In this document: positions 9,729-62,607 of the stretch, piece after piece
How positions within the stretch are numbered: position 1 is the stretch's first letter
Layout: each line of letters begins with the position of its first letter
From: Epithemia pelagica
Taxonomy: Eukaryota; Protista; Bacillariophyta
Length of the DNA: 64,000 bases
Direction: 5' to 3'
NCBI GenBank assembly: GCA_946965045.2
Contig: OX337239.1
Coordinates: 3,100,001-3,164,000 of the forward strand
Made by a program: the position numbers and the translations under genes
Notes under the pieces: generated by a model
What the model was told of the DNA's origin: nothing
The model's input: only the letters and a program-made list of their open reading frames with translations
The model's database searches: none

Positions 9729-10916
9729 ATGACCACGACACTGAAAGAACAAGCATGGCAGTCGGACCTTGTCCTACCGGACGACACAGCAGAATGGGAT
9801 GAAAACGATTGGCCTGCTTTTCTGGGAGGAGCGCGAGAGTATCATGCTTCGGTCGTACTTGACCATCCCGAGACGGAAAACGATAGCAACAACAGGGGGC
9901 AGACGGTCGTCGTGTTGGGAGGATATCAAACAGGCCAAGGCGAGCTCAATTCCATTCTGTTATTGAATCTGGCAGACCAAAACAAGCAGTGGCGAGAAGG
10001 GCCACCCATGAACAAGAGACGTGCTGGACATGCCACTGTTGTGTGCAACGGTCGCGTCTACGTCATGGGCGGATTCAATCGAGTAACTTTGGATTGTATT
10101 GAACGAATCGATGCCAATGATTTGCTACAATCATCCTTAACAACAACCACCACGCATGAGAGTCATTGGACGACATTGACATGTCGATTATCGACGAGAA
10201 GAAATGGATGTTGTGCTGTTGCGGTGCATGATCGATACATTGTTGTAATGGGTGGCTGTTACAACCATCGCGATTTGTCGTCGGTGGATATTATTGATAC
10301 CAACAATCACATTGTCACTGCTGGACCAAGCATGACTGTTCCTCGATCATACTGTGCCAGTGCGGTGATTGGACACCGCATCTTTGTCGTTGGAGGTTGT
10401 TATGGGCATGCCTTTCTTGACTCGGTGGAGTATTTGGACTATGCAACACCCTGTGACAAGGATGCGACAAAAAAGGAGATAGGCTCGGCGTCCATTTCTT
10501 TCTCAGCCACCTGGACCACTCATTTGGAGTTGAGGCTTTCCAATGGACGAAGGTCTTGTGCAATGGTTGCCGTCGGATCCTGTCTGACTGTGGCGGGAGG
10601 ATGGGACAATTCAACTGTGGAAGTTTTGGATACGCACCGCATCCGCGTTTGGAATCTCGCTGGAGTTCAAGAACAACGTTGGGGCTGCAGTATGGTGACT
10701 GTTGCCAATCATGTTGCCGTGATTGGTGGATGGGACAATCCTACCTGTGCGACATTTCCACTACTGGATAAGCATACTTGGTGTTTTCGTTGTCTCTGTG
10801 AGCAGCCTCGGAGGGAATGGTATTATTGTCCAGAAAGATCGGGTAACGAAGATGTTAGTGAAATAGCCTGCACCATCTCGACATCCGCTCTTAAACGATT
10901 GAGGACCAATACATGA
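9729..10916 (+). CDS. Kelch-repeat protein, copy K1 (six blades)
   Basis: Starts MTTTLKEQAW at ATG 9729; the longer ORF-finder start runs through transposon/LTR DNA. Six GG-containing kelch motifs (VVVLGG, VYVMGG, IVVMGG, IFVVGG, LTVAGG, VAVIGG). Confidence 0.9.
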   Translation: MTTTLKEQAWQSDLVLPDDTAEWDENDWPAFLGGAREYHASVVLDHPETENDSNNRGQTVVVLGGYQTGQGELNSILLLNLADQNKQWREGPPMNKRRAGHATVVCNGRVYVMGGFNRVTLDCIERIDANDLLQSSLTTTTTHESHWTTLTCRLSTRRNGCCAVAVHDRYIVVMGGCYNHRDLSSVDIIDTNNHIVTAGPSMTVPRSYCASAVIGHRIFVVGGCYGHAFLDSVEYLDYATPCDKDATKKEIGSASISFSATWTTHLELRLSNGRRSCAMVAVGSCLTVAGGWDNSTVEVLDTHRIRVWNLAGVQEQRWGCSMVTVANHVAVIGGWDNPTCATFPLLDKHTWCFRCLCEQPRREWYYCPERSGNEDVSEIACTISTSALKRLRTNT

Positions 10917-12634
10917 TGGAGGATGGCACTTGAAATGTTCAACAGGTTGCACGGCCATGAGCTTGGCAACTATATCATGACCATTATACTATCGTACAAA
11001 ACAGGACATCGTGTCCATCCTAAGTTACGCTGTGAATCATTTAAGATTATGAAAAGCTCTAAATCACTTTAACCATGCACGAGTGGCTTGCTCTGTCGAA
11101 AAAGACATTACTCTAGTTTTACTTTAGACTGCTTTCAAAAAGCAACTCCTAGTTTGGTTTGAAGGCTCCACCTTCTATAGAAGATGACCGCACATGAATT
11201 TCCTTCTGACGCCATGGCGTTTGTGGCAGTCGGATCCATGCACCATGGTGAGCAATCGTGTAGTAGATAATGAGATGTCTGCAAACCTGCGGATATCTGG
11301 CAACCACACTTGGATGAATGGCCATGGTACCGTTTCCTCGTGCTGTTGAATACTCTCTGGTCTTGATCAGAATGAATCATCTTTGAATGGAAGATGACAG
11401 TCTTTCATGGTCTCGTTTCAACTCTAAGGCAAAGAAGAAGCGGCCTGAATTGTCTCTCTTCAAGTGATGGCATATAAAGAACAAGTGACGTTTCGACCAT
11501 GACCTGATAGTTGTGGGACAGTCGGTGGGGCCATGCATTGGTAGCAACGGCGGGATCCCACAGCCAACACAGTTTGTCTTCGTTTTGTTTCCGTTGCGAT
11601 GGTAGCAGTGCAAAGTATACTTCCCCTGTTGCAGGCAGGACAAGTTTATCGTGGGTCGTCGTCGATTCCTCGTTCTTGGTGTCAATGTCTCGTTGTGGAG
11701 CAACCAATCCGTCGACGCGGTACAAATATTGGTGGTGTGCTACAATTCCCAAGACTGTGCTTCGGGTGGACCTTGTTCCAACAAGGCAACTGTTTTGGAA
11801 GTCGTCATTTGATCCACCCATTGTGATGATGATGCATCGATCGACCTGTTGTGCAAGCGACGATTGTTCTTCTTGTTGTTTGGCTGCTATTGGCGGATCA
11901 GGAAGCGCGATTTTTCACTTCTTGTCATGATCCTTGTTGAAAGAGACGGACGATTGTTACAGTGGTGTTGTTCGGATGGGTCAAGGCGAATGTTGTTGTC
12001 ACTGTTGTCCACTTCTGATTGTTCTTTGTAGAAATCGAGCATGGGTGGTTGCTACTTCTGTACTTTTGTTTTGTTATTGGGCGTGGAAGTGGGGAAACCG
12101 ACAAGTTTTACACACCACTCCACCAAGGCAATATTTTTACAGCAGAATGAGCAAGCGACAAAAAAGCACAAGCGAGGCCCCAACAAAGCCTTGTCACAAG
12201 CAGGACAGGAATGTTGATTGATTGTTCATTGTCAAGGCTGGCCTCTCTTATGTATCGTGAAATCTTTATCTAGTTTCACTCTTTTTGGCTGGAGGTCGTT
12301 TTGACGTAACAAAACTCCTGTACGTTCTCGACGCAACAGGTGGATTCAAGCGACAACTACCCCGGTCCACCTTTTGTTCCTTGCACTGTTGTGGTTTTCC
12401 ATCGAGACGACAACGTCACCCACTGGCAAATATAGCACCGGTCCCTTGGTGAACAGAGGCATCACGTCTGCCACAATCATTGGACCACATACGCGAGCAT
12501 TATACTGACAACCGGCGGAGACAGCACGAGACGGTTTTGGCTCTCCCAAAAAAACGATGATTGATGGAGTCGGTATCAATCATGACATAAGGGACCAACC
12601 TTTCCGGTCCAACCACATCCACGTGACATTCTCG

Positions 12635-13205: not shown

Positions 13206-14342
13206 ATGACAACGACACTGCAAAAGCAAGCATGGCAGTCGGGCCTTGTCCTGTTAGACGAGTCACCTGAATGGAATTTCGAGCACTGGCCTCCTCTTGT
13301 GGGTGGATGGCGTGGAGGTCATACCTCGGTCGTACTGAATCATACCGATAACAACCAAGAACAAACCGTCGTCGTGTTGGGTGGACATCGAACAGGTCAA
13401 GGCGAGCTAGATTCCATTCTTGTATTAAACTTGGCAGAATCAAACAAGCAGTGGCGCGAAGGGCCACGCATGAACCAGAAACGTGATGGACATGCCGCTG
13501 TTGTGTGCAATGGAGGCATTTACGTGATGGGAGGAGACAATGGAGCACCTTTGGATTGTATCGAACAAATTGATGCCAATTATTTGCTGCATTCACCTTT
13601 AACAACAAGCAACAAACATGAGAGGCATTGGACAACATTGACATGTCGGTTATCAACGCCACGATGGGGATGTGGTGCTGTCGCGGTTCACAACCGATAC
13701 ATCGTTGTATTGGGTGGACGCAGCAATCGTTATTTGCCGTCGGTGGATATTATTGATACAAACAACCACCTAGTCACTGCGGGACCATCCATGACTGTTC
13801 CACGAGCATGGTGTGCCAGTGCGGTCATTGGACACCGCATCTTTGTCGTTGGAGGTTGGAACGAGCATGGTCGTGTTGACAATGTGGAGTATTTGTACTA
13901 TGCAACACCCTGTGACAGTGATGTGACAAAAAAGGAGATAGGCTCGACATTCATCTCTTTCTCATCCACCTGGACCACTCATTCGGAGTTGAGGCTCTCC
14001 AATGCACGAAGTTCTTGTGCAGTGGTTGCCGTGGGATCTTGTTTGGTTGTGACGGGAGGATGGGGCAATTCAACCGTGGAAGTCTTGGATATTCACCGCA
14101 ACCGCGTATGGAATCTCCCACCATTTGGAAATCACCGTGTGGGCTGCAATATGGTGACTGTTACAAATCACGTGGCCGTGATTGGTGGATGGGAGAATCC
14201 CTCCTGTACAACATTACCACTCCTGGATAGGAATTCGTGGTGTTTTCGTCGACTTTGTGAGCAGCAGCCCAATGGATGGGAGCATTCTCTTGAAGGCACG
14301 GGTATCCGAGACGCTGATATCTCACGCTTCTTCAACTCGTAA
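13206..14342 (+). CDS. Kelch-repeat protein, copy K2
   Basis: Open paralog of K1 with the same six-blade pattern; ATG at 13206. Confidence 0.9.
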   Translation: MTTTLQKQAWQSGLVLLDESPEWNFEHWPPLVGGWRGGHTSVVLNHTDNNQEQTVVVLGGHRTGQGELDSILVLNLAESNKQWREGPRMNQKRDGHAAVVCNGGIYVMGGDNGAPLDCIEQIDANYLLHSPLTTSNKHERHWTTLTCRLSTPRWGCGAVAVHNRYIVVLGGRSNRYLPSVDIIDTNNHLVTAGPSMTVPRAWCASAVIGHRIFVVGGWNEHGRVDNVEYLYYATPCDSDVTKKEIGSTFISFSSTWTTHSELRLSNARSSCAVVAVGSCLVVTGGWGNSTVEVLDIHRNRVWNLPPFGNHRVGCNMVTVTNHVAVIGGWENPSCTTLPLLDRNSWCFRRLCEQQPNGWEHSLEGTGIRDADISRFFNS

Positions 14343-16438: not shown

Positions 16439-19400
16439 TCAGTCGCTATTGGAAGGTTTGCGTCGTTTCCTTTGCCTTGGTGAAGGATCCTGGTCCGAGG
16501 TAATCTCATCTTCGTTGGACCGGCGCTCTCGTCTATTTGACAGGGCGAGAGCGTGTTTCTGATGAATTTTGAAACAAGTGACTGCCTTTTCTGCAACCAC
16601 CTTGACGTGACCAACCAACTGTTTGTATCTGGAATCTGTTCCGTTCAAGTCCATAGTAGCAACAAAAACAAGACATTCGCTTAGGTCGAGTTCAAGAAGT
16701 CACACATGAATTATTCCTGCCGAAATTTGCGCTGCAACACTTACCATACACATTTTCGCCAGTGATTTCACAAATTTGCATGGTTGGTAGTTGGGTTGGG
16801 AACAGACCACTGAAATCATCAAGCCACTTGTTGGCGCTTCTACTAATAGGTCTATCAATTGGGTTCTTTGGCGAAACTAGAAGTGACGCACTCGCTGTAG
16901 CGGGAGAAGACGGGAGGACCCAATGACATCCTGGAAAGGCATCCACAATCACTCGACTGACACCCGTCCAGGGGCAAACAGTCTCGTTCCGCGCCAAAGC
17001 ACACAATAGCTCAGCAATACACCATTTCTTTTGAACATAGTGTGTCGATGTCACACAAACCACAACTCGCGCTGTAAGAGCGTTCGTCAACATGGTAACA
17101 AGCGGATAAGATTGGTGTCCGGCATGCATTGTTTTTTCTGCCACAAAGATATTGAGTATGTTGCCACCACCAGCCGCGATTTGCAACTGATCCTCCAAAC
17201 TGGTCACATAGTCAAACTCGAGCTCTTTTCGAACTTCCCCGGCAAACGAAATGAAAACGTGGTATTTTGGTTTTTGGTTTGCAGAAGGAACCTTGTCGAG
17301 CATCATCTTTGCCAAATCGATTCCACATGACATAATATCTTGAACTGTCTTCAATCTTTGAGGATTCAACTGTTCCAGGTCCTCTTTTCCTGATGTCATC
17401 TGAAGTCGGAGCGTATTAATCCTTCCACGAGCGTCAGATACTTTTAGGAGGCGCTTGCCAAGCTTGACAAAGCTCATTGAAGACATTGAATCTAATTCGA
17501 CGATCAGCGTTGCACCATATTCAATGGCATGCCTGAGAATTGTATCCAAACACTGCAGTTTGTTACCGATTTGCGCAACAATTTCTCCCTGTCCGCTGCT
17601 GTTCATGGTAGCCGATGGCAATTGACAGTTGCTCTTGATGACTGTACTAGCTTCTTGATTGTTTGAGACCTCCGAGCGACCGGATGCCAACAACAACGGG
17701 CGGTTGGGCGACCTGTATTGAATTGATTCCCATGTTGGACTAGTATGTGTGATCCCTGCGACCGCCTGTGCTTCTAGGTGCGGTTGATTGCTATGGCTTA
17801 CATCATAGGTAAGCCAATTGACGTTCTTTTTTAATGCTTTCGAAACCTGTTTCATATCATGATCCGACATGTTCGTATTTCCAACATCAAACAAACGCCA
17901 CCCGGAATTTTGCTGCAATGCCGTGGACAGGGAAATCATGCCATCGTCTCCAACATCAGTATGTGCCAATCGCAAGTGTCGCCATGTCTTTGATGACGTC
18001 AGAGCTTGTAACAACGCACTGAGACCAAGATCGGACATGTTCGTGAACCCGAGATCAAGAGTATGCCACGATCGACGCGCGATACCCCAAACCAAGTCGA
18101 TCACTCCTTCACCAGTGACCATTGGCATGTTGGAAACGGAAAAACTTGACCACGTGGTGTTACGAGACAACGCTATTCCTAAATCATGTGCTCCCTGTTG
18201 GCTGATCTTGATATGAGACAGATTCATACAACGCCAATCACAATTGCTCTTCATCCCATTTACCAGCGCCTTTACACCAGGATCATCAAGATCCGAATTG
18301 GCCAGGTCCAAGATTTGCCAGTTTGTGTTCCTTTGCAACATCTCCGCAATGGCATTGGCTCCGTCCTCCCCAATGTCCAGATGACTCAACGACAAACGAA
18401 ACCAATGGACATTGCCTTTTGGTCTAGATCCAAGAGCGGCTGATGCTATAGAAGCATTGGTGCTGTCAATGTTCTCTGCCGTTGCACCATCACCTTGAAT
18501 TGACTGGATCAGTCCAAGGGCTGCTAGAAACGTCAACCGTGGCGTGTGGTGAAGTGAAATGGTTCGAGGAATGGTAAACGGTCGACCGACACGGAGTGCC
18601 TCGTTCGATGGCAGCATGCACAAATCCATGGATTGCCAGCATTGTCCCAAATACTCTGCCATTTCCAGGGCATCGGTTGCTTTTTCATGATTTGTGAGGA
18701 AGAAATTTGAAATTGTTTCTTCCGTCACTCCAATTTCGTCTGGATGGTTCTCTAGCAGAAAGGGCAGGTGCTGAATGGGGTTGTTGTTCGAGTATGGAAA
18801 CCAAAGCACCAATGAGTTCCAGTTTTTCTCCAACCGTTGGAGAATGGCTGGACCAACCTTGAGCCATGACCAAACTTCTTGACCTCGCACATGTAAAACA
18901 AACCGTTCCCAGCTTGGTGACGTTTTTAGTAGATTGGCCAACATTTCCACCCCTTGGTCGGGAGTGCCATAAGGGAGACTCAAAGCAAAATATTTCCAAG
19001 AGGTTTGTCGACGGAGAGCCTCGGCTAGTATGTCGACATGTGTTGCCTTTTCTAAATCCATATCAAACACTCGCCAGACTGAGTTGCCATGCAGTGTTCT
19101 GGTAACGGATCCCAGTCCTCCATCAAAATCAGAGGGAAATGTATAGCTAAACGTTTCCCAGCATTGATTGCAACGCAAGGCATGTGACAATGCTTCCATT
19201 TCACAGTCGCGGATCCTCGGAACCCGTGTACCAAATCGTACCTCAAGTTGGAAAGATTTCCATGTTTTGTTGACACTCAAGGCTTCAACCAAGGCTTTGA
19301 CTCCATTCACAGAAGAAAACTGTATGTCCCAGAGCTCGAAGTTGGTCCATTGGGTATTTTGTTGCAGTGCTTTTGCCAGTGCTTCAACTCCTTCATCTTC

Positions 19401-19973
19401 AAGGTTCGTACTAACAAGCTCCAACTCCTGCCAAACGTGATTGTTGCCCAAAGCACCAACCAGTGCTTTCCATCCACGCGATCCAAAATTGCAGTGCTGA
19501 ATAGACAACTTCTCCCAGGACGGATTTTGATCCATAGCATTCGCGAACCGAACCGCCATTTCGTCGTCCAGGGCTTTTACGAAATACAATCTCAGCTCAG
19601 GATCTCGGTTTGTTGTCGTTTTAACAAAAACACGGGCGAGCGCTTCAATGCCCACGTCACCGATATCCGAATGGCGGAGCGACAGCTTGGACCAATCCAC
19701 ATTAGCACGTCCTCTGCCCCTGACGTCTCTATCAAAATCGAGAATGGCTTGTGCAGTGCGGTCAGTGGCTTTGGTGTTGGTCAATCTTGGCAAAAACGGT
19801 TCTTTCCCAAAGTGCTCCACCATTCGTTGTTTCATCTTGGGGCTGATCCGGGTACGTCGCAATTGATATGGATCGCATTCGTTCATTTCAGGGTTGTTTA
19901 CGTCCATTGTCGTTTCTGGAAGAGGCATGGTGCGGTCCATTGGCTCGTTGAGGTCGAAAGTCGTTGTTGTCAT
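16439..19973 (-). CDS. LRR-TIR protein (RNI-like LRR blocks, helical linker, C-terminal TIR domain, basic tail); two exons
   Basis: 1093-codon ORF 19973-16692. Repeats such as LSHLDIGEDGANAIAEML-NTNWQILDLANSDLDDPGVKAL. TIR motifs YHVFISFAG, IFVAE, VVVCVTSTHYVQKKWCIAEL. Predicted intron 16744-16636 (GTAAGT...CTAA...CAG, phase 1 at both ends) joins ENVY to DSRYKQ...RQRKRRKPSNSD, stop at 16439. Confidence 0.85.
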
Positions 19974-21795: not shown

Positions 21796-22549
21796 TAGCA
21801 GAACTCTCATTGAGAATTCAGAAGGGTAATAGGTAGTTGGGTAAAAGGCTCGCTGAGCCGACAATCGAATCACCAACCGATACAACAATCCTCCACGGGT
21901 CAGAGAAGAGTTGCAAGTCGAAGTCCGCCGTGGGTGGGGGCAGTCGGTCCACTGATAAGAGGTAAGTCTTAAGATGAGTGTTAAAATGGTGATATTAATG
22001 ATTGTGAGACGATTACTAACTAAGGTGGTTGATGGTGCCGAAGTCCTGGCTCTTGTATACGGCCATGGATCTGGTGTGATAGGTCCTCACTGGTTGGAGT
22101 AGACCGGCATTGGTGTATATTGAATGTATAGGGTGATGGATAACATGTATGGGATGCAACAGCTCTTGCTTTGTCGTGGTATAAGTCTTGTGCTGGGCGC
22201 GTTGCTGTTTGCATTCTTGGATTAGTGGGAACAGAGATATGGTCTCGCGTGATCGTGATTCGTGCTTTGATTACATAGACCGTTAGGTCGAATCGTGGAT
22301 GCGCGTACTCGGATAGTCAAGGCGCGCATTCGATGGTTTTGGGCGCGCACGTGTTGGGCCATAGTTAATATCCGAGCGGTCGCCAATAACACGTGCAATG
22401 CGAGCATGCCATGGCCAAATTTATAGTTTCGCGAGCATGCCGACATTCCTTTCTCACTATTAGGAAAATGTCATCGGATGCCATAAAATACTAGCATCAT
22501 TCGATGAGTTGTAGGTTTCGCCACCTAGCTTTCGGTGAGAATCCTAACA
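21796..22549 (-). repeat. 3' LTR of element 2
   Basis: Direct repeat of 26356-27109. Confidence 0.92.
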
Positions 22550-28096: not shown

Positions 28097-29282
28097 ATGG
28101 CCACGACGATGAAAGAAAAAGCATGGCAGTCGGGCCTTGTCCTGTTAGACGAGACACCTGAATGGAATTTCGAGGACTGGCCTCCTCTTGCGGGTGGATG
28201 GCGTTGCTATCATGCTTCGGTCGTTCTCGATCATCCCGATAACAAGACGGAACAAACCGTCGTCGTGTTGGGCGGATATCGAACAGGTTATGGCGAGGTC
28301 AATTCCATTCTTGTATTAAATTTGGCAGACCCAGACAAGCAGTGGCGAGGGGCCACCAATGAACAAGAGTCGTCGAGGACATGCCGCTGTTTTGTGCAAT
28401 GGCGGCGTCTACGTGATGGGAGGTCGCAATACAGCAACTTTGGATTGTATCGAACGCATTGATGCGAACGATATACTACAACCATTTTTAACAGCAAGCA
28501 CCACACATACGAGTAATTGGACGACATTGACATGTCGATTATCAACGCGACGGTTTGGATGTTGTGCTGTCGCGGTTCACAACCGATACATCGTTGTAAT
28601 GGGCGGCTACAACGATCATGATTTGTCGTCAGTGGATATTATAGATACAAACAACCACACTGTCACTGCGGGACCAAGCATGAATATTCCTCGATCATAT
28701 TGTGCTAGTGTGGTCATTGGTAACCGCATCTTCTCCGTTGGAGGCTACACAGGACGCTCGGTGGAGTATTTGGAATTTTCAAAGCCTGGTGACAATGAAG
28801 AGACAAAAAAGGAAACTGGCTCGACGTTCATTTCTTTCTCGTCGACCTGGACCGCTCATTCTAATATGGTGCTTTCCAATGCACGAAGTTCTTGTGCAGT
28901 GGTTACCGTGGGATCCTGTTTGGTAGTGGCCGGAGGACTAGGCGATTCAACCGTGGACGTCTTGGATACGCACCGCAACCGTGTGTGGAATCTCCCACCA
29001 TTCGGAAATCGCCGCGATCACTTCAGTATGGCGATTGTTGCCAATCATGTTGCCGTGATAAGTGGTTTTGGCAGTTCTGCCTGTGCGACATTACCACTAC
29101 TGGACAAGCATACGTGGTGTTTTCGACGACTCTTTGAGCATCAGATCGACAGATGTTGTCTATTTCGGGAAGGAAGGAATATCCAACTTGCTGATAATTC
29201 ACCCTTCTCCGCCTCGACATCAGCTCATAAACGAGCAAGGCCCGATACACGCCGTGGTGATGAAGGAAAGGATGAAACTTGA
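28097..29282 (+). pseudogene. Kelch-repeat copy K3, frameshifted
   Basis: Starts MATTMKEKAW at 28097. A 2-bp loss near 28349 (gcgag-gggccacc vs gcgagAAgggccacc in paralogs) shifts into the 28359-29282 frame. It could be a sequencing error. Confidence 0.85.
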
Positions 29283-31900: not shown

Positions 31901-33040
31901 ATGACCACGGCACTGAAAGAACAAGCATGGCAGTCGGGCCTTGTCCTTTCAGACGGGACAGCAGAATGGAATGAGAACAACTGGCCTCCTCTTGAGGGTG
32001 GATGGCGAGAGCGTCATGCTTCGATCGTACTGACTCATACCGACAACAACAAGGAACAAACCGTCGTCGTGTTGGGCGGATTTCAACAAGGCCAAGGCGT
32101 GCTTGATTCCGTTCTTGTATTAAACTTGGCAGAATCAAACAAGCAGTGGCGGGAAGGTCCACCCATGCACCAGAAACGTTCTGGACATGCCGCTGTTGTG
32201 TGCAATGGAGGCATTTACGTGATTGGAGGATTCTCTGAAGGTTCATGTTTGAATTGTATGGAACGAATTGATGCCAATGATGTGCTGGAATCATCTTTTA
32301 CATCAAGCACCACACATGCGAGTAATTGGACGAGATTAAGCTGTCGATTATCAAAGGGACGACATGGATGTTGTGCTGTTGCGGTGCACAACCGATACAT
32401 CGTTGTAATGGGTGGCTACAGCGATCATGATTTGTCGCCAGTGGATATTATAAATACAAACAACCACACTGTCACTGAGGGACCAAGCATGACTGTTCCA
32501 CGAAAATGGTGTGCCAGTGCGGTGATTGGCCACCGCATCTTTGTCGTTGGAGGTTGGAACGGTAATGAATATCTTGACTCGGTGGAGTATTTGGACTATG
32601 CAACACCCTTTGACAATGATGAGACAGAAAAGGAGATAGGCTCGACGTTCATGTCTTTCTCGTCCACTTGGATCACTCAGTCGGAGTTGAGGCTTTCCAA
32701 TGCACGAAGTTGTTATGCAATGGTTGCCGTGGGATCTTGTCTAGTGGTGACTGGAGGATACGAATCATCCGTGGAGGTCTTGGATACGCATCACAACTGC
32801 ATGTGGAATCTCCCACCATTCGTGAATCACCGCAATGGCTGCAGTATGGTGACTGTTGCCAATCAAGTTGCCGTGATTGGTGGACTCCGCAATCCTTCCT
32901 GTGCAACATTACCACTTCTGGATAGAAATTCGTGGTGTTTTCGTCGACTCTGTGAGCAGCAACCGAACGGATGGCATCATTCTCTTGAAGGTGTGGGTAT
33001 TCGAGATGATGATATCTCACCCTTCTTCACCTCGGCATGA
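31901..33040 (+). CDS. Kelch-repeat protein, copy K4
   Basis: Open six-blade paralog; ATG at 31901. Confidence 0.9.
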   Translation: MTTALKEQAWQSGLVLSDGTAEWNENNWPPLEGGWRERHASIVLTHTDNNKEQTVVVLGGFQQGQGVLDSVLVLNLAESNKQWREGPPMHQKRSGHAAVVCNGGIYVIGGFSEGSCLNCMERIDANDVLESSFTSSTTHASNWTRLSCRLSKGRHGCCAVAVHNRYIVVMGGYSDHDLSPVDIINTNNHTVTEGPSMTVPRKWCASAVIGHRIFVVGGWNGNEYLDSVEYLDYATPFDNDETEKEIGSTFMSFSSTWITQSELRLSNARSCYAMVAVGSCLVVTGGYESSVEVLDTHHNCMWNLPPFVNHRNGCSMVTVANQVAVIGGLRNPSCATLPLLDRNSWCFRRLCEQQPNGWHHSLEGVGIRDDDISPFFTSA

Positions 33041-33468
33041 GCTCGTAAACGAGCAAGGCCCAATACATGCCAAAATGATAGAGGGAATGATGAAGCCTAG
33101 CCGTTTATTTCTCGAGTGGTTGACTTGTTTTCTACATTCGATTGCAATCTTAGAACCTAGTAGGTAGTTACTCAAAAGTAGAAAGAACATGTTGCAAGAA
33201 AGAGGGTGCTTGTTTGTTGTCAAAGATGTGGAAAGAACGACCAATTTTTTGTCTCTTAAAGTGGTAGTGCCAGGGCTTTGTGGTGGCATCTTGACACTTT
33301 GTAGGACACAGAGACATGGTCCATGGATCGGTTGCCGTCAAGGGACGCCGGAAGCCGACAGTGGTGCACTCCAGAAAGGACGAGTTTCGCATCGATTTCG
33401 TAGCCAAGGGCAATACGGTTGGTCGCCATTTTGTGTCCACTACTATTGAGTAGTGAAGAGTACTCTTA

Positions 33469-34491
33469 GTGTTCGTGACTGGACAAGGCCAATGTGTCAC
33501 CAATTCCGTGCTTGTATTGAATTTAGCAGAATCAAACAAGCAGTGGCGCGAAGGGCCATCCATGAACAAGAGACGTTATGGACATGCCGCTGTTGTGTGC
33601 AATGACGGCGTCTACGTGATGGGAGGAAACAATGGAGTGAATCTGGATTGTATGGAACGAATTGATTCCAATGATTTGCTGCAATCATCTTCGACATCAA
33701 GCAGCACACGTGCGAGCCATTGGACAAGATTAAACTGTCGGTTATCAACGGGACGATCACGATGTGGTGCTGTTGCGATTCAGAACCGATACATCGTTGT
33801 AATAGGTGGCTGGAACATGGGTTATTTTTCGTCGATGGATATTATTGATACCACGCACCACACCGTCACTGTGGGACCATCCATGACTGTTCCACGACAT
33901 TTTTGTGCCAGTGCGGTCATTGGTCACCGCATCTTTGTCGTTGGAGGCCAAAAGGATGATGACTTTCTTGACTCGGTGGAGTATTTGGAATTTTCAAAGC
34001 CTGAGACTGGCTCTACATTCTTTTCTTTCTCATCCCCTTGGACCACTCATTCTGAGTTGGTGCTTTCCGATGCACGAAGTTCTTGTGCAGTGGTTTCCGT
34101 GGGATCTTGTCTGGTGGTGGTGGGAGGAAGGACGAATTTAACCGTGCAAGTCTTGGATACACACCGCAACCTCGGATGGAATCTCGCTCCATTTCGTAAT
34201 TTCCGCAGGGGCTGCAGTCTGGTGACTGTTGCCAATCAAGTTGCCGTGATTGGTGGTGGATACAATCCTACCTGTGCAACATTACCACTACTGGACAAGA
34301 ATTCGTGGTGTTTTCGACAACTCTGTGAGCACCAATTGAACGGATGGTATCGTTCTCTTGAAGGTGCGGATATCCGAGATGAGGATATCTCACCCTTCTT
34401 CACATCGAAGTCAGCTGGTAAACACGCAAGGCCCAATACGCTCCATGGTGACAAAGAGAAGGATCAAGCCTCTAGCCGTTTATTTCTCTAG
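33469..34491 (+). pseudogene. Kelch-repeat copy K5, 5'-truncated
   Basis: Lacks the conserved MTTTLKEQAW...LGG N-terminus and the promoter module. Spacer sequence gttcgtgac is fused to internal kelch sequence. The first ATG (33562) lies inside blade 2. Confidence 0.8.
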
Positions 34492-36664: not shown

Positions 36665-37526
36665 AACCTACCCTCGTTATATATTGTTGTTTGGGTCCTG
36701 CTGAATTTGCTCTTCGTGTCGTGCTGCTCAACGAACGAGCAGGGCGGCTGTTCCCATTGTTGTTGTTTGGGTGAAACTGTGGTTGTTGTTCTTGTTGTTG
36801 TCGGCATTATCGTAGTACAATCGAGTGACTGTGTTGCCATTGCTCCTTTCCCACACAAGCCAGGAGTTTCGACATCTGTTGGTCGTGCTCCTTGTGTGGC
36901 TTGGTTCATGGTCTCTTGTGGTCAATGAATCCGACAAAAGGACGAAACGGGTGGATTCCAATGTCTGATGATGAGAGAAGCAGTACGACGAAAAACACGA
37001 CAAGCCAAAAACCTTGTGGACCCTGTAGTCCGCTTCTCTTATGGTTGTTTTTGGAAATGGAGCATGGTTGGTTGCTGCTTCTCGACATTCCTCGTCCGTC
37101 GTCTTGTGAAGAACGAATGAACCCTCCTTGACAATCAAGGGGAAGGAAGCAGTCTCTGGACTGACACAACTGGGTCGACAGTGGTTGAATTAAACTTCTA
37201 TGTTTTGTTTTGGTTGTCGATTCTATTAGAATCTCTTTGGCCAACATACGCTTCGTATCCAACAGAAGCACTGGCTCCAAAGCTTCCACGTCCACGTGTA
37301 GTACTCAAACTCCTACCTCCGATCGGGCATGAATGTCAGGGTGTCGCGTGTGTGTCGTGCTTTCTGTGTTTTAATCACTGAGTCACTAATCCTCTTGATT
37401 CCCCCGCTGGGGGCTAGTATAGTAAGGTTACTCTTCTTCAGTCCACACCCATCAGAGCAGCCCACTGCAATCTACACATCAGTCAGTGTCATAAATGCGC
37501 TGCGGTCAACAGAAGGAAGAGTGAAC

Positions 37527-38736
37527 ATGACTCTGAAAGAACAAGCATGGCAGTCGGGCCTTTTCCTTTCAGACGAGACAGCAGAATGGAATGAAAACGA
37601 TTGGCCGCCGCTGGAGGGTGGATGGCGCCGGCATCATGCTACGGTCGTAATTGATCATCCCGAAAAGGAACTCCACAACGACAACAAGGGACAAACGGTC
37701 GTCGTGCTGGGAGGAGTCAACGAAGAATATGATACTACCAACTCCGTTCTTGTTATGACTTTGGAGGGCGAGAACAAGCAGTGGCGAGAAGGGCCACCCA
37801 TGAACAAGGCACGTGATGAACATACCGCTGTTGTTTGCAACGGAGGCGTCTACGTGATGGGAGGATACAATCAAGGTTCGTTGAATTGTATCGAAAGAAT
37901 TGACGTTAAGGATTTGCTGCGATCATCTTTGATATCCAGCACCACACAGGAGAGCCCTTGGACGACATTGACATGCCGATTATCAACGACAAGAAATGGA
38001 TGTTGTGCTGTTGCGGTTCACAACCGATACATCATTGTGTTGGGTGGCTATTGCAACCATCGCTATTTGTCGTCAGTGGATATTATATACCAACAATCAC
38101 ATTGTCACTGCTGGACCATCCATGACTGTTCCACGACAATGGTGTGCCAGTGCGGTCATTGGTCACCGCATGTTTGTAGTTGGAGGCCAAAACAATGTTG
38201 ACTATCTTGACTCGGTGGAGTATTTGGAATTTTCAAAGCCTGGTGACAATGAAGAGACAAAGAAGCAGACTGGCTTGACATTGAGTACTTTCTCGTCCAC
38301 CTGGATCACTAATTCTGATTTGGTGCTTTCCAATGCACGAAGTTCTTGTGCAATGGTTGCCGTGGGATCTTGTCTGGTTGTTGCAGGAGGATGGTTCAAT
38401 TCAACCGTGGAAGTCTTGGATACGAAGCGCAACCACGTGTGGAATCTTCCACCATTCGGAAATCACCGTGTTGGCTGCAATATGGTGACTGTTTCCAATC
38501 AAGTTGCCGTGATTGGTGGATATCGCAATCCTACCTGTGCGACATTCCCATTAATGGACAAGAATGCATGGTGTTTTCGTCGACTCTGTGAGCAGCAATC
38601 GAACGGATGGTATCATTCTCTTGAAGGTATGGGTATCCGAGATGCTTATATCTCACCCTTCTCCACATCGACATTAGCTTGTAAACGCGCAAGGTCCAAT
38701 ACTCACCTCGGTGATAAAGGAGAGGATGAAACTTGA
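37527..38736 (+). pseudogene. Kelch-repeat copy K6, frameshifted
   Basis: ATG at 37527 (MTLKEQAW). A 2-bp loss near 38086 (gatattat-ataccaac vs gatattatTGataccaac) shifts into the 37996-38736 frame. Confidence 0.85.
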
Positions 38737-41288: not shown

Positions 41289-42431
41289 ATGAGCACGACA
41301 CTGAAAGAACAAGCATGGCAGTCGGGCCTTTTCTTATCGAAAGAGACAGCACAATGGAATGAAAATGATTGGCCTCCTCTCGAGGGTGGATGGCGTGACG
41401 AACATGCGACAGTCGTACTAGATCATCCCGATACGGACAACGACAACAACAACAAGAGACAAACCGTCGTCGTGTTGGGTGGATATCAAGCAGATCAGGG
41501 CAGTCTCGATTCCATTCTTGTATTGAACGTGACAGCACCGGACAAGCACTGGCGAGAAGGGCCATCAATGAACAAGAGTCATCGAGGACATGCCGCTGTT
41601 GGGTGCAACGGAGGCGTCTATGTGATAGGAGGATACAATGGAAGATTATATTTAGATTGTATCGAAAGAATTGACGTAAAGGATTTGCTGCGATCATCTT
41701 CGACATCCAGCACCACACAGGAGAGCCCTTGGACGACATTGGCATGTCGATTATCAACGGGACGGTTTGGATGTTGTGCTGCTGTGGTTCACAACCGATA
41801 TATCGTTGTAATGGGTGGCTCTTACAACCATCGCTATTTGTCGTCGGTGGATATTATCGATACCAGCAATGACGCTGTCATTGCGGGACCATCCATGACT
41901 GCTCCACGACAATGGTGTGCCAGTGCCGTTATTGGCCACCGCATCTTTGTCGTTGGAGGCCGTAACGAGAACGGCCAACTTGACTCGGTGGAGTATTTGG
42001 ACTTTGCAGAGGAGACACAAAACGACACTTTGTCAACAGTCATTTCCTTCTCATCCAGTTGGATCACCCATTCTGATTTGGTGCTTCCGAACCCTCGAGC
42101 TTATTGTGCAATGGTTGCCGTGGGATCTTGTCTTATTGTGGCCGGAGGAAGCCGTCAAACCGTGGAAGTGTTGGATACGCACCGCAACCGCGTTTGGAAT
42201 CTCCCATCACTCGGAAATGACCGCTTTGACTGCACTATGGTGGCTGTTGCCAATCAAGTTGCCGTGATTGGTGGTGGATTCAATCCTACCTGTGCAACAT
42301 TACCGCTACTGGACAAGAATTCGTGGTGTTTTCGACAACTCTGTGAGCAGCAGCCCAACGGATGGTATCATTCTCTTGAAGGTGCTGATATCCGAGATGA
42401 AGATATCTCACCCTTCTTCACATCGACATGA
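41289..42431 (+). CDS. Kelch-repeat protein, copy K7
   Basis: 380-aa open six-blade paralog. Confidence 0.9.
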   Translation: MSTTLKEQAWQSGLFLSKETAQWNENDWPPLEGGWRDEHATVVLDHPDTDNDNNNKRQTVVVLGGYQADQGSLDSILVLNVTAPDKHWREGPSMNKSHRGHAAVGCNGGVYVIGGYNGRLYLDCIERIDVKDLLRSSSTSSTTQESPWTTLACRLSTGRFGCCAAVVHNRYIVVMGGSYNHRYLSSVDIIDTSNDAVIAGPSMTAPRQWCASAVIGHRIFVVGGRNENGQLDSVEYLDFAEETQNDTLSTVISFSSSWITHSDLVLPNPRAYCAMVAVGSCLIVAGGSRQTVEVLDTHRNRVWNLPSLGNDRFDCTMVAVANQVAVIGGGFNPTCATLPLLDKNSWCFRQLCEQQPNGWYHSLEGADIRDEDISPFFTST

Positions 42432-44748: not shown

Positions 44749-45837
44749 ATGACTCTGAAAGAACAAGCATGGCAGTCGGGCCTTTTCCTTTCAGACGAGA
44801 CAGCAGAATGGAATGAAAACGACTGGCCTCCTCTTCAGGGTGGATGGCGTTATCTTCATGCTACGGTCGTACTCGATCATCTCGACAAGGAACTCCACAA
44901 CGACAACAACAACGGACAAACTGTTGTCGTGTTGGGAGGACATCAACAAGGTCAAGGTGATGTCAATCCCGTGCTGTTATTGAATCTGGCAGACCCAGAC
45001 AAGCAATGGCGAGAAGGAACGCCCTTGAACAAGAAACGTTCTGGACATGCCGCTGCTGTGTGCAACGGAGCCGTCTACGTGATGGGAGGATACGATGAAG
45101 GTCCATTGGATTCTATTGAGCGAATCGATGCCAATGATTTGCTGCAATCACCTTTAACAACCAGCAACAAACATGAGACGCATTGGACGACATTGACATG
45201 TCGCTTATCAACGACAAGAAATGGATGTTGTGCTGTTGCGGTGCACAACCGATACATTGTTGTAATGGGTGGATGGGATGGAAGGCAAAGGTTGTCGTCG
45301 GTGGATATTATTGATACCAGGAACCACACTGTCACTCCGGGGCCAAGCATGGCTGTTCCTCGATCTTTTTGTGCCAGTGCGGTCATTGGCCACCGCATCT
45401 TTGTCGTTGGAGGCCAAAACACTGATGACTATCTTGACTCGGTGGAGTATTTGGACTTTGCAACACCCTCTGACAATCGCGAGACAAAAAATGAAACTGG
45501 ATCTACATTCATTTCCTTCTCATCCACCTGGATCACTCATTCTGATTTGGCGCTTTCCAATGCACGAGGTTCTTGTGCAATGGTTGCCGTGGGATCCTGT
45601 CTGGTTGTGGCGGGAGGATGGCACAATTCAAACGTGGAAGTCTTGGATACGCACCACAGCCGCGTGTGGAATCTCCCACCATTCGGAATTAACCGTGACG
45701 ACCTTAGTATAGTGTCTGTTGCCAACCAGGTAGCCGCGATTGGTGGATGGGAGAATCATTCCTGTGCAACATTGCCACTCATGGATAGGAATTCGTGGTG
45801 TTTTCGTCGACTCTGTGAGCAGCAGCTCAACGGATAG
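44749..45837 (+). CDS. Kelch-repeat protein, copy K8 (tail truncated)
   Basis: ATG at 44749 and six blades intact. A TAG replaces the Trp codon of the conserved NG-W tail motif. Confidence 0.85.
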   Translation: MTLKEQAWQSGLFLSDETAEWNENDWPPLQGGWRYLHATVVLDHLDKELHNDNNNGQTVVVLGGHQQGQGDVNPVLLLNLADPDKQWREGTPLNKKRSGHAAAVCNGAVYVMGGYDEGPLDSIERIDANDLLQSPLTTSNKHETHWTTLTCRLSTTRNGCCAVAVHNRYIVVMGGWDGRQRLSSVDIIDTRNHTVTPGPSMAVPRSFCASAVIGHRIFVVGGQNTDDYLDSVEYLDFATPSDNRETKNETGSTFISFSSTWITHSDLALSNARGSCAMVAVGSCLVVAGGWHNSNVEVLDTHHSRVWNLPPFGINRDDLSIVSVANQVAAIGGWENHSCATLPLMDRNSWCFRRLCEQQLNG

Positions 45838-45979
45838 TATCATTTTCGGGATGGAATGGATATCGGACATGCTCATATTTCACCCTTCTGTTTTCGTCGA
45901 CTCTGTGAGCAGCAGCTCAACGGATTGTATCATTTTCGGGATGGAATGCACCCTTCTCCTTCTCGACATCGGCTCGTAA

Positions 45980-53950: not shown

Positions 53951-55168
53951 ATGACCACGACACTGAAAGAACAAGCATGGCAGTCGGGCCTTGTCCTGTT
54001 AGACGAGACACATGAATGGAATTTGGAGGACTGGCCTTCTCTTGAGGGAGAAGGGCGTTATCGTCATGCTTCGGTCGTACTGAATCATACTGATAACAAC
54101 CAAGAACAAACCGTCGTCGTGTTGGGTGGATATCGAACAGGTCAAGGCGAGCTAGATTCCATTCTTGTATTAAACTTGGCAGAATCAAACAAGCAGTGGC
54201 GCGAAGGGCCACGCATGAACCAGAAACGTGACGGACATGCCGCTGTTGTGTGCAATGGAGGCATTTACGTGATGGGAGGAGACAATGGAGGTTCAGATTT
54301 GAATTGCATGGAACGAATCGACGCCAATGATTTGCTTCGATCATCTTTGACAACCACCACCACGCATGAGAGCAGTTGGACGGCATTGACATGTCGCTTA
54401 TCAACGCATCGATTTGGATGTTGTGCTGTTGCGGTTCACAACCGATACATCGTTGTAATGGGTGGCCATAACAACGATGGTTATTTGTACGGCCATTACA
54501 ACGATGGTTATTTGTCGTCGGTGGATATTATAGATACAAACAACCACACTGTCACTGCGGGACAATCCATGACTGTTCCACGACAATTTTGTGCCAGTGC
54601 GGTCATTGGCCACCGCATTTTTGTCGTTGGGGGGCAAAACGATGATGGCCATCTTGACTCTGTGGAGTATTTGGACTTTGCAGAGGAGAGAAAAGATGAC
54701 ACTTTGTCTACAGTCATTCCCTTTTCGTCTAGTTGGATCACTCATTCGGAGTTGAGGCTTTCCGAACTTCGAGGTTCCTGTGCAATGGTTGCTGTGGGAT
54801 CGTGTCTGGTGGTGGCGGGTGGACAAGGCCATTCAACCGTGGAAGTCTTGGATACGCGCCGCAACCGCGTTTGGAATCTCCCACCATTCGGAAATCGCCG
54901 CGATGACTTCTGTATGGCGACTGTTGCCAATCAAGTTGCCGTGATAAGTGGTTTTGGCAGTCCTACCTGTGCGACATTACCACTACTTGACAAGCATACG
55001 TGGTGTTTTCAACGACTCTGTGAGCAGCAGCCCAACAGATGGTGTCTTTTTGGGGAAGGAATGAATATCCAACATGCTGATATTTCACCCTTCTCGACCT
55101 CGACATCAGCTCATAAACGCGCAAGGCCCAATACACGCCGTGGTGATGAAGGGAAGGATGGAACTTGA
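53951..55168 (+). CDS. Kelch-repeat protein, copy K9
   Basis: ATG at 53951; open; carries a 9-aa loop duplication (HNNDGYLYGHYNDGYL). Confidence 0.9.
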   Translation: MTTTLKEQAWQSGLVLLDETHEWNLEDWPSLEGEGRYRHASVVLNHTDNNQEQTVVVLGGYRTGQGELDSILVLNLAESNKQWREGPRMNQKRDGHAAVVCNGGIYVMGGDNGGSDLNCMERIDANDLLRSSLTTTTTHESSWTALTCRLSTHRFGCCAVAVHNRYIVVMGGHNNDGYLYGHYNDGYLSSVDIIDTNNHTVTAGQSMTVPRQFCASAVIGHRIFVVGGQNDDGHLDSVEYLDFAEERKDDTLSTVIPFSSSWITHSELRLSELRGSCAMVAVGSCLVVAGGQGHSTVEVLDTRRNRVWNLPPFGNRRDDFCMATVANQVAVISGFGSPTCATLPLLDKHTWCFQRLCEQQPNRWCLFGEGMNIQHADISPFSTSTSAHKRARPNTRRGDEGKDGT

Positions 55169-57537: not shown

Positions 57538-58692
57538 ATGACAACGACACTGAAAGAAGAAGCATGGCAGTCGGGCCTTGTCCTGTTAGACGATGAGACA
57601 GCTGAATGGAATTACCAGGACTGGCCTCCTCTTGAAGGTGAATGGCGTTCTCGTCATGCTTCGGTCGTGCTGAATCGTACCGATAACAACCAAGAACAAA
57701 CGGTCGTCGTGTTGGGCGGATATCAACCGGGGCTAGGCGAGCTAGATTCCATTCATGTATTAAACTTGGCAGAATCAAACAAGCAGTGGCGAGAAGGGCC
57801 GTCCATGGACAAGAAACGTGGGCATCATGCCGCTGTTGTGTGCAATGGCGGCGTCTACGTGATGGGAGGATACTCTGAAGGTTCATGTTTGAATTGTATC
57901 GAACGAATTGATGCCAATTATTTGCTGCAATCATCTTTGACAACCAGCATCACACACGAGATGAACTGGACGACATTGACATGTCGGTTATCAACGCCAC
58001 GATGGGGATGTGGTGCTGTCGCGGTTCACAACCGATACATCGTTGTAATGGGTGGCTACAACGGTCGTTATTTGTCGTCGGTGGATATTATTGATACCAG
58101 GAACCACACTGTCTCTGTGGGACCATCCATGAATGTTCCTCGATTTTGTTGTGCCAGTGCGGTCATTGGACACCGCATCTTTGTCGTTGGAGGTTGGAAC
58201 GAGCATGGTCGTGTTGACAAGGTGGAGTATTTGTACTATGCAACACCCTGTGACAGCGATGTGACAAAAAAGGAGATAGGCTTGACATTCATTTCTTTCT
58301 CACCCACCTGGACCACTCATTTGGAGTTGAGGCTTTCCAATGCACGAAGATCTTGTGCAGTGGTTGCCGTGGGATCTTGTCTGGTTGTTGCAGGGGGATG
58401 GGGCAATTCAACCGTGGAAGTCTTGGATACGAACCGCAACCGCATGTGGAATCTTCCGCTATTGGAAAATCCCCGAAATGGCTGCAATATGGTGACTGTT
58501 GCCAATCAAGTTGCCGTGGTTGGTGGATGGTTCAATCCTTCATGTGCAACATTACCACTAATGGATAGGAATTCGTGGTGTTTTCGTCGACTCTGTGAGC
58601 AGCCTCGGAACGAATGGTACGAGTTTCGGGATGGAATGGGTATCCGAAATAACCAAGGACCACGTGAAGCCCAACACATGTCATTACGATAG
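57538..58692 (+). CDS. Kelch-repeat protein, copy K10
   Basis: ATG at 57538; open six-blade paralog. Confidence 0.9.
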   Translation: MTTTLKEEAWQSGLVLLDDETAEWNYQDWPPLEGEWRSRHASVVLNRTDNNQEQTVVVLGGYQPGLGELDSIHVLNLAESNKQWREGPSMDKKRGHHAAVVCNGGVYVMGGYSEGSCLNCIERIDANYLLQSSLTTSITHEMNWTTLTCRLSTPRWGCGAVAVHNRYIVVMGGYNGRYLSSVDIIDTRNHTVSVGPSMNVPRFCCASAVIGHRIFVVGGWNEHGRVDKVEYLYYATPCDSDVTKKEIGLTFISFSPTWTTHLELRLSNARRSCAVVAVGSCLVVAGGWGNSTVEVLDTNRNRMWNLPLLENPRNGCNMVTVANQVAVVGGWFNPSCATLPLMDRNSWCFRRLCEQPRNEWYEFRDGMGIRNNQGPREAQHMSLR

Positions 58693-61512: not shown

Positions 61513-62607
61513 ATGAGCATGGCACTGAAAGAACAAGCATGGCAGTCGGGCCTTGTCCTTTTGGACGAGACAGCAAAATGGAATGAAGACGACTGGCCTC
61601 CTTTCGAGGGCGGAAGGCGAGAGGATCACGCGACGGTTGTACTTGATCATCCCGTTATGACTGACAATAACAACGACAAGGCACAAACAGTCGTGGTGAT
61701 GGGAGGATGCAAGAAAGGCTGGAATACTACCAATTCCGTTCTTGTACTGAATTTAGCAGCGCCGGAGAAGCACTGGCGAGAAGGGCCATCAATGAGCAAG
61801 GCACGTGATGGACATGCTGCTGTGGTGTGCAATGGAGGCGTCTACGTAATGGGAGGATACTCTGAAAGTTCATGTTTAAATTGTATCGAACGAATTGACA
61901 TGAAGGATTTGCTGCAATCATCGTTGACACCCAGCACTATGCATGAGAGTCATTGGACGACATTGACATGTCGCTTATCAATGGGACGAAAAGGATGTTG
62001 TGCTGTTGCGGTTCACAATCGATACATAGTTGTAATGGGTGGCTATTCCAACCATCGCCATTTGTCGTCAGTGGATATTATTGATACAAGGAACCACACT
62101 GTCACTGCGGGACCAAGCATGACTGTTCCACGACGATGGTGTGCCAGTGCGGTTATTGGTCACCGCATCTTTGTCGTTGGAGGCCAAAACAGTGACGATG
62201 AACTTGATTCCGTGGAATATTTGGACTTTGCAGAGGAGAGGCAAAACGACACTTTGTCTACAGTCATTTCCTTCTCATCCAGTTGGATCACCCATTCTGA
62301 TTTGGTGCTTCCGAACCCTCGAGCTTATTGTGCAATGGTTGCCGTGGGATCTTGTCTTATTGTGGCCGGAGGAAGCCGTCAAACCGTGGGAGTGTTGGAT
62401 ACGCACCGCAACCGCGTTTGGAATCTCCCATCACTCGGAAATGACCGCTTTGACTGCACTATGGTGGCTGTTGCCAATGAAGTTGCCGTGATTGGTGGTG
62501 GATTCAATCCTACCTGTGCGACATTACCACTACTGGACAAGAATGCGTGGTGTTTTCGTTGTCTCTGTGAACAGCAGCCCAACGGACGGTATCAGCTTCT
62601 GGATTGA
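61513..62607 (+). CDS. Kelch-repeat protein, copy K11
   Basis: 364-aa open six-blade paralog. Confidence 0.9.
   Translation: MSMALKEQAWQSGLVLLDETAKWNEDDWPPFEGGRREDHATVVLDHPVMTDNNNDKAQTVVVMGGCKKGWNTTNSVLVLNLAAPEKHWREGPSMSKARDGHAAVVCNGGVYVMGGYSESSCLNCIERIDMKDLLQSSLTPSTMHESHWTTLTCRLSMGRKGCCAVAVHNRYIVVMGGYSNHRHLSSVDIIDTRNHTVTAGPSMTVPRRWCASAVIGHRIFVVGGQNSDDELDSVEYLDFAEERQNDTLSTVISFSSSWITHSDLVLPNPRAYCAMVAVGSCLIVAGGSRQTVGVLDTHRNRVWNLPSLGNDRFDCTMVAVANEVAVIGGGFNPTCATLPLLDKNAWCFRCLCEQQPNGRYQLLD

Follow-up and report, generated by a model that had tools for sequence, protein, structure and literature searches.

The window analysed here, a 64,000-nucleotide (nt) stretch of the genome of the diatom Epithemia pelagica (contig OX337239.1, positions 3,100,001 to 3,164,000 of the forward strand), carries an array of Kelch genes that belong to a large family. 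Members of this family share a conserved beta-propeller in which an excess of non-synonymous change is concentrated at particular positions of one set of loops, and the copies recombine with one another. A tblastn search with copy K7 as the query finds exactly 11 Kelch copies in the window, spanning 9729-62649 and all on the + strand; the genes are intronless.

K1, 9729..10916, + strand: intact stand-alone Kelch gene of 395 amino acids, identified by tblastn, translation and alignment
K2, 13206..14342, + strand: intact, 378 amino acids; Pfam Kelch_1 E = 4.7e-29
K3, 28097..29282, + strand: 2-nt deletion in an Arg codon at 28346; pieces 28097-28345 and 28347-29282
K4, 31901..33040, + strand: intact, 379 amino acids
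K5, 33502..34491, + strand: 5'-truncated; starts at about residue 74, with ~73 residues missing and most of blade 1 gone
K6, 37521..38736, + strand: 2-nt deletion at 38088; pieces 37521-38087 and 38089-38736
K7, 41289..42431, + strand: intact, 380 amino acids; the copy used for the structure model
K8, 44749..45837, + strand: propeller intact, first Met at 44749; a TAG shortens the tail, and a duplicated tail segment follows it
K9, 53951..55168, + strand: intact, 405 amino acids
K10, 57538..58692, + strand: intact, 384 amino acids
K11, 61513..62607, + strand: propeller intact; early TGA in the tail

Six of the eleven genes (K1, K2, K4, K7, K9 and K10; 378-405 amino acids) are intact. K8 and K11 keep the whole propeller and have premature stops in the C-terminal tail, and three copies (K3, K5 and K6) are counted as broken. 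The K3 frameshift is read from the three-frame translation and from two tblastn pieces that lie in different frames; K5 starts 460 nt downstream of K4. The original prediction proposed a codon alignment of K1-K11: eleven copies do exist, but K3 and K6 carry 2-nt deletions and K5 lacks ~73 residues. Homology between the units consists mostly of the coding sequence and, in most copies, ~35-450 nt of flank; since it ends so close to the coding sequence, carriage of the Kelch units by a mobile element, which we considered, is unlikely.

The tails show some further features. At the 3' end of K8 a segment encoding CFRRLCEQQLNG occurs twice, at 45799-45834 and 45889-45924 (90 nt apart), and the TAG stands directly after the first CFRRLCEQQLNG copy, a small tandem duplication that amounts to truncation of the tail. 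In K4 (33038-33100), K7 (42429-42500) and K11 (62605-62700) an in-frame TGA is followed by coding sequence for a basic tail (A/H-[RK]-x-R-A-R-[PF]-[ND]-T...), which lies inside the open frame in K3, K5, K6 and K9. These TGA codons could be recent nonsense mutations or could be subject to stop-codon read-through; the basic tail resembles a nuclear localisation signal. K7's closest relative, at 98% identity (locus L002, contig C9:3406081-3407220), is open except for a TGA at codon Trp209, the hypervariable Arg207+2 position.

Propeller fold and placing of the variable residues

Pfam recognizes the Kelch genes by Kelch_1 with E = 1e-29 to 1e-34 (100-115 bits against a cut-off of 20.1), and matches to Kelch_6, Kelch_2 and the KLHDC2/KLHL20 Kelch domain also exceed the Pfam cut-offs. 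Only Kelch-type families are found by Pfam, with no BTB, BACK or F-box domain (E <= 0.01) and no NACHT/NB-ARC, and the protein sequence contains no hydrophobic or membrane segment and no signal-peptide-like start.

An AlphaFold2 (AF2) model of K7 was built from an input alignment of paralogues and relatives at 34-57% identity (mean predicted local distance difference test score, pLDDT, 88; predicted template modelling score, pTM, 0.87). It replaces a first model made from paralogues only, which had a pLDDT of 70.9 and was poor at both termini; a Foldseek search with that first model agrees with the Kelch-domain matches. In the better model, 24 strands form six four-stranded blades over residues 14-342 of 380, with an N-terminal helix (5-11), a ring-closing strand (14-16), a C-terminal helix (343-353) and B-C loops that are short hairpins. 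A strand at residues 21-28 was dropped: the better model has a loop at 17-39, and selected site 25 (see below) therefore falls in a D-A-type loop. By VIA-align the model superposes on NS1-BP, KLHL12 and KEAP1 with Z 34.6-35.5 and a root-mean-square deviation (rmsd) of 1.4-2.1 Å over 255-268 residues; for the KEAP1 Kelch domain, Z is 34.6 and the rmsd 1.5 Å. In all six blades, both positions of the GG doublet and the Arg of the D-A loop have entropies of 0-0.7 bits. The motif scores, the closed six-blade ring and the GG doublet and D-A Arg in each blade identify the proteins as Kelch beta-propellers. We assigned loops to faces from the strand topology of the model and the superposition ranges rather than from measured distances: four antiparallel strands in a meander place the B-C and D-A loops together on one face of the propeller, with the A-B and C-D loops on the opposite face.

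The loop strings on which the original prediction was built are all present in the protein alignment of the window copies. After the blade-2 GG the copies read FNRVTLD (K1), DNGAPLD (K2), RNTATLD (K3), FSEGSCLN (K4), NNGVNLD (K5), YNQGSLN (K6), YNGRLYLD (K7) and YDEGPLD (K8). From K1 to K11, the variable pair of PR-xx-C is SY, AW, SY, KW, HF, QW, QW, SF, QF, FC and RW, and the variable residue of R-x-GC is N, W, F, H, (S), N, F, N, F, W and K. The predicted pattern of conserved blade cores with variable adjoining loops holds, and is wider than described, as it recurs in all six blades.

To quantify variation across the family we used an alignment of 94 members, comprising the window copies and 91 retrieved paralogues; the sequence retrieved included 61 gene-sized stretches. 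Mean entropy is 3.0 bits at the position after the conserved D-A loop Arg (Arg+1) but drops to 0.3 at the preceding Arg and to 0.5 at Arg+3; at GG+1..+6 it is 1.5-2.3 bits, against 0.1-0.7 in strand B. Ranked by variability, the top 30 columns include 25 from B-C or D-A loops and no strand column (Fisher p = 2e-8). The Arg+1 columns are gap-free and flanked by invariant residues. Across 31 copies with synonymous divergence (dS) of 0.2-0.55, ~70 columns are invariant.

Selection at individual loop positions

We measured the ratio of non-synonymous to synonymous change (dN/dS, or ω) without a tree, over 31 independent nearest-neighbour pairs. Window copies differ from one another by pairwise dS of 0.2-0.55, and synonymous sites are therefore not saturated; their gene-wide dN/dS is 0.4-0.77. 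Values are as follows, with intervals in brackets.

Strands: dN/dS 0.33
Strand B: dN/dS 0.19
Loops of the other face: dN/dS 0.47
B-C and D-A loops as a whole class: dN/dS 0.90 [0.73-1.10]
Arg+1, six blades: dN/dS 2.25 [1.92-2.61]
Arg+1, the four blades outside the examples of the original prediction: dN/dS 2.24 [1.74-2.83]
Conserved Arg itself: dN/dS 0.31
Arg+3: dN/dS 0.16
GG+1: dN/dS 1.67 [1.31-2.05]
GG+1..+6: 1.12 [0.95-1.30]
25 window-defined variable sites, 24 pairs without a window copy: dN/dS 1.66 [1.22-2.12]
Remaining sites, same 24 pairs: dN/dS 0.44
25 window-defined sites, local dS (±2 codons) as yardstick: 1.60 [1.37-1.88]
25 window-defined sites, own synonymous sites as yardstick: 1.28 [1.00-1.67]
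25 window-defined sites, 13 out-of-window pairs at p-distance <= 0.06: 1.17

All but one of the 25 window-defined variable sites lie in B-C or D-A loops, and dS in variable codons is 0.149 versus ~0.11 elsewhere. For whole loop classes the ratio is not above 1, and we therefore limit the claim of selection to specific motif positions.

Codon site models (M0, M1a/M2a, M7/M8a/M8) were fitted to 348 codons of 93 non-redundant paralogues. Because recombination is strong, the alignment was split into three segments, each with its own tree; the codon-likelihood code was home-made and branch lengths were fixed up to a scale. The M1a/M2a, M7/M8 and M8a/M8 comparisons are all significant, with twice the log-likelihood difference (2ΔlnL) at 158-375 across segments: 335, 195 and 255 for M7/M8, and 307, 158 and 242 for M8a/M8. 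Simulation under ω <= 1 on four conflicting trees supplied four null data sets; analysed on one inferred tree, these gave 2-19 and -17 to 11 for the same two comparisons. The positive class comprises 6-9% of codons with ω of ~2.5-3.5. The 11 window copies alone give an M7/M8 2ΔlnL of 98 with a single tree and 29-40 per segment, a signal that is clear and far less overwhelming. We take this class, recovered after screening for recombination, to argue against loops held at or below a dN/dS of 1 throughout.

Of 24 sites with P > 0.95, 11 fall in B-C loops, 11 in D-A loops, two (130 and 193) in C-D loops and none in strands. As the original prediction had expected, the selected sites are clustered rather than scattered, 22 of the 24 lying in what the model predicts to be the B-C and D-A loops of one face (Fisher p = 4e-9 in comparison with all other sites, and 0.0014 when the comparison is with the loops of the other face). 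Window-only analyses place 17 of 18 and 20 of 20 selected sites in the same two loop types. A FUBAR-like grid with a per-site synonymous rate puts 19 of 22 strong sites there and finds 154 sites with P(β<α) > 0.9; it loses the strong sites 37, 160, 209, 225, 227 and 330 because multi-base changes raise the inferred α. Some ten additional weak calls by this grid (β <= 1, α ~0.3) were treated as artefacts of low α and heavy prior smoothing. Tyr, Phe, Trp, His, Arg, Asp and Glu are over-represented at the selected sites. In K7, the principal positions are these:

41397..41402, + strand: codons 37-38 (Arg36+1 and +2; D-A loop into blade 1); M8 P = 1.00; tree-free p = 5e-5 and 2e-4
41634..41660, + strand: codons 116-124 (blade-2 B-C loop after GG 114-115); codons 119-121 selected
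41766..41768, + strand: codon 160 (Arg159+1, the x of R-x-GC); 15 residues in the family; site ω ~7.5; tree-free p = 3e-6
41910..41915, + strand: codons 208-209 (Arg207+1 and +2, the xx of PR-xx-C); both selected
42225..42227, + strand: codon 313 (Arg312+1); 17 different residues
42276..42290, + strand: codons 330-334 (blade-6 B-C loop); 330-331 selected, site ω 4 and 7.5

In KEAP1, NRF2 motifs bind a pocket built by the D-A and B-C loops. Its listed residues include a series of consecutive pairs at a spacing of one blade (363; 414/415; 461/462; 508/509; 555/556; 602/603) and post-GG residues (334; 380/382; 431-436; 478/483; 525/530; 572/577) (PMC12314335). As the original prediction proposed, the variable positions of the diatom proteins lie, in the superposed model, in the B-C and D-A loops that form this NRF2 pocket. 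The superposition ends with model residue 322 opposite KEAP1 611, and K7 313/314 would stand opposite KEAP1 Ser602/Gly603 if the last ten superposed residues are gapless; we infer the remaining register from the repeat spacing.

Recombination and competing explanations

The pairwise homoplasy index (PHI) test gives 0.44 observed against 0.556 ± 0.0065 (p = 0.001), which indicates strong recombination. Near-identical tracts of 100-315 nt that span whole blades lie inside otherwise divergent pairs. The 3' third of K11 is nearly identical to that of K7, with 6 differences in 315 nt against 145 in 750 elsewhere, and K2 and K9 share a tract at alignment codons 44-115, with 3 differences in 198 nt against 171 in 849 outside it. 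In most close pairs the differences are clustered (variance/mean 2.4-4.8). Where selected codons differ, 59% do so at 2-3 bases, against 20% of other codons, and whole-codon (3-nt) replacements at selected codons are seen even in pairs 1.5-3% apart. From the clustered differences, the tracts and the multi-base codon changes we conclude that existing loop variants have been moved between copies. K9 carries in addition a 27-nt tandem duplication at 54467-54514 (NNDGYL-YGH-YNDGYL), which lengthens its blade-3 B-C loop by 9 residues; loop length has therefore varied as well as sequence.

The reading that we favour, and think likely, is that a conserved scaffold and diversifying, recombined pocket positions constitute a repertoire of predicted binders. 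The original prediction had spoken of diversifying selection on ligand specificity; the excess at specific pocket positions and its clustering agree with this, while the loops as wholes are not above 1. That the face binds ligands, that ligand diversity is the selective driver and that specificity is thus the trait under selection is what we infer. Several results weigh against the repertoire reading. The B-C and D-A loops as a whole class are not above 1, GG+1..+6 gives 1.12 [0.95-1.30], and the window-defined sites give 1.28 [1.00-1.67] against their own synonymous sites and only 1.17 in the closest pairs. Two selected sites (130 and 193) are in C-D loops, on the opposite face. There are indels in some B-C loop columns, where misalignment could exaggerate the amount of change. 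Much of the difference between copies is due to recombination, which also violates the tree model, and the home-made code has optimiser noise of up to ~17 units of 2ΔlnL. Three of the eleven window copies are broken. Finally, the public data that hold the stretch are four runs of unrecorded kind, kept only as short contigs that collapse paralogues.

One alternative is relaxed constraint only, in which the loops are free to vary (ω ~1) and the excess comes from recombination, multi-nucleotide changes, misalignment and the picking of sites. The whole-loop ω of 0.90 and 1.12, each with an interval that includes 1, the 1.17 of the closest pairs and the 1.28 [1.00-1.67] with the own-codon dS yardstick would suit it, as would strong recombination and the many selected codons with 2-3 base differences. 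It does not account for the tree-free excess at sites that are defined by motif and not chosen by variability (2.25 at Arg+1, 1.67 at GG+1), nor for the 1.66 [1.22-2.12] that window-defined sites give in pairs without a window copy. The M8a/M8 2ΔlnL of 158-307 compares with 11 or less in the recombining null; misalignment is hard to invoke for gap-free Arg+1 columns between invariant residues; and the choice of residues is biased to aromatic and charged side chains. We consider relaxed constraint unlikely to be the whole explanation.

We give still less credence to a purely mutational mechanism, in which loop codons are altered, usefully or not, by templated conversion over short tracts or by a mutation rate that is higher there. 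Clustering of differences in most close pairs, 3-nt replacements at selected codons in pairs 1.5-3% apart, the dS of 0.149 against ~0.11 in variable codons and the 27-nt duplication in a K9 loop all point in its direction. The near-identical tracts, however, are 100-315 nt long and correspond to whole blades, not to loop-sized cassettes, and conversion moves existing variants and cannot alone lift the family-wide ratio of non-synonymous to synonymous change above neutral. Nor is the excess shared by the flanking ±2 codons, and ω is 0.31 for the Arg codon and 0.16 for Arg+3, both at a distance of only 3-9 nt.

Neutral decay of a non-functional amplified family, that is, subtelomeric duplication of a dead or selfish gene, is barely credible: the three broken window copies of eleven, varying tail stops, interspersed transposons, unproven expression and the family's being seen in the assemblies of one organism only speak for it, but only 3 of the 91 paralogues have a stop before residue 350, strand dN/dS is 0.19-0.33 with 154 purifying sites, and the ~70 columns stay invariant in 31 copies at dS 0.2-0.55.

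In outline, purifying selection holds the scaffold, while diversifying selection acts on the post-GG hairpin of the B-C loop and, in the D-A loop, on some two positions of each blade (Arg+1 and sometimes Arg+2). Recombination or gene conversion between paralogues spreads new combinations, and small tandem duplications alter loop length. The outcome would most likely be a repertoire, encoded in the germline, of binding modules that act in the cytosol or nucleus and differ in their pockets, and changing ligands may be the selection that keeps the pockets diverse.

Genomic setting and known systems

We searched a genome of 60.5 Mb in 23 contigs. There are at least 110 full-length family matches, out of 938 first-look candidates, and a degenerate DNA pattern for the blade-3 motif gives 533 matches against 1 for a reversed-pattern control. 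By these matches the family has roughly 500 members; its share of the genome is ~1%. The arrays lie at C13 3.08-3.29 of 3.31 Mb, C9 3.07-3.58 of 3.60 Mb, C17 2.95-3.17 of 3.19 Mb, C18 2.80-2.84 of 2.88 Mb and C6 0.02-0.39 Mb, overall within the last 0.02-0.5 Mb. Arrays on these and other contigs are placed near chromosome ends, in the manner of subtelomeric variant gene families, with some motif matches elsewhere. A stop before residue 350 is found in only 3 of the 91 retrieved paralogues. The K4 coding sequence is identical to that of a gene on another contig in inverted orientation (L031, C6:328281-329414), and K11 has a near-twin with 4 differences at C6:55090-56226; either there was a very recent exchange between two chromosome ends or the assembly is redundant.

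The best 120 matches of a word search of the database are all ENA proteins, as are 10 sampled representatives at 37-57% identity, and one traced contig (ENA analysis ERZ21939226) has the same layout of Kelch and LRR genes. The next relatives, beyond 37% identity, are giant multi-Kelch proteins at ~30% identity. Judged by these matches the family is lineage-specific, and a full-text literature search found no paper describing such a Kelch family.

Other genes and elements lie in or beside the array:

16692..19973, - strand: LRR-TIR gene, 1093 amino acids, inside the Kelch array and not a family member; Pfam LRR_6 and TIR
2398-8709, - strand: copia-type retrotransposon just upstream of K1, with a 691-amino-acid gag-like open reading frame (ORF) and a 1409-amino-acid pol ORF (RVT_2)
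22525-25851, - strand: long ORF of 1108 amino acids, no Pfam match
48498-50588, + strand: long ORF of 696 amino acids, weak DUF6729 match

The two long ORFs are probably remnants of mobile elements. Pfam finds no NB-ARC or NACHT match in the LRR-TIR protein. A 99% identical copy of its gene is at C6:342357-345635, and ~40 further LRR-TIR matches, many of them fragmentary, are nearly all at chromosome ends with Kelch arrays. In public run X4, read depth over K7 and K8 is 100-2000x that of the intergenic sequence within 41000-45900, with four intergenic bins empty; in the other three runs the ratio of genic to intergenic depth for K7/K8 is 10-50. The X4 pattern would fit an RNA library, though it is not proof, the kind of run being unrecorded.

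The closest known structure is the Kelch domain of KEAP1/KLHL proteins, and the closest known mechanism that of the fungal WD40 genes het-d/het-e. With KEAP1, KLHL12, KLHL3, KLHL20 and NS1-BP the diatom proteins share the six-bladed Kelch propeller with a GG doublet and a D-A loop Arg per blade, and their variable Arg+1/+2 and GG+1..+6 are the motif positions that line the NRF2 pocket, in a register read partly from repeat spacing. They differ in sequence, with 19-26% identity, and in number, with hundreds of paralogues as opposed to one gene per substrate set; their pocket-equivalent residues are under diversifying, not purifying, selection. Having no BTB or BACK domain, they fall outside the BTB-Kelch proteins and therefore have no evident link to CUL3. 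Plant F-box-Kelch proteins form large, tandem, lineage-specific families with a Kelch recognition module. In the diatom Kelch genes there is no F-box, and residues 1-13 are a short helix before the first strand; they are therefore not F-box-Kelch proteins, and their domain content does not support a role as ubiquitin-ligase adaptors.

In the HNWD genes (het-d/het-e) of Podospora anserina, a few surface positions of the WD repeats, on the interaction face, are under positive diversifying selection, and repeats are exchanged within and between paralogues (PMC1805685, PMC2873952). The diatom family is alike in having a beta-propeller with diversifying positions in each repeat and exchange between paralogues. 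The fungal WD40 propeller, in contrast, is fused to NACHT and effector domains, whereas the diatom Kelch propeller stands alone; HNWD has ~10 members that exchange single repeats, whereas the diatom family is ~50x larger and its tracts are 100-315 nt. Brown-algal LRR-ROCO and NB-ARC-TPR genes are described as a fast-diversifying stramenopile repertoire proposed as pathogen receptors, which uses LRR/TPR repeats, exon shuffling and fused signalling domains (PMC3341825). The diatom genes are, unlike these, intronless and Kelch-only, and are diversified by point change and recombination between genes. The fusion of NACHT or NB-ARC to repeats that defines NOD-like receptor (NLR)-type proteins is seen neither in the Kelch genes nor in the neighbouring LRR-TIR gene.

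Viruses, bacteria, oomycetes and chytrids all attack diatoms, a major group of primary producers. We know of no characterised variable recognition repertoire in diatoms, and the Kelch family, situated among LRR-TIR genes, is a concrete and testable candidate for one. With the fungal WD40 het genes as the first example, it would be a second, independent instance of recognition through a diversifying face of a beta-propeller. Its clustering with LRR-TIR genes hints at a role in conflict or immunity but does not show one. A more specific proposal, which we regard as speculative and on balance doubtful, is that intracellular immunity in the diatom uses the Kelch propellers as its variable sensors and signals via the LRR-TIR proteins of the arrays. 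If so, the pocket variants would recognise viral, bacterial or parasite molecules or their effects on host targets, and the system would be a two-gene analogue of NLR or TIR immunity on a Kelch fold. If the proteins are instead substrate adaptors or a product of genetic conflict, the family would be a case of a Kelch pocket re-tuned hundreds of times on a fixed scaffold, and such repeated re-tuning is relevant to designed Kelch binders.

Apart from the Kelch family, the genome encodes silicon transporters in at least 11 full-length genes on C11, C16, C1, C13 and C18, several of them in tandem pairs on C11; their Pfam Silic_transp scores reach 756 bits, and they support the genome's diatom origin.

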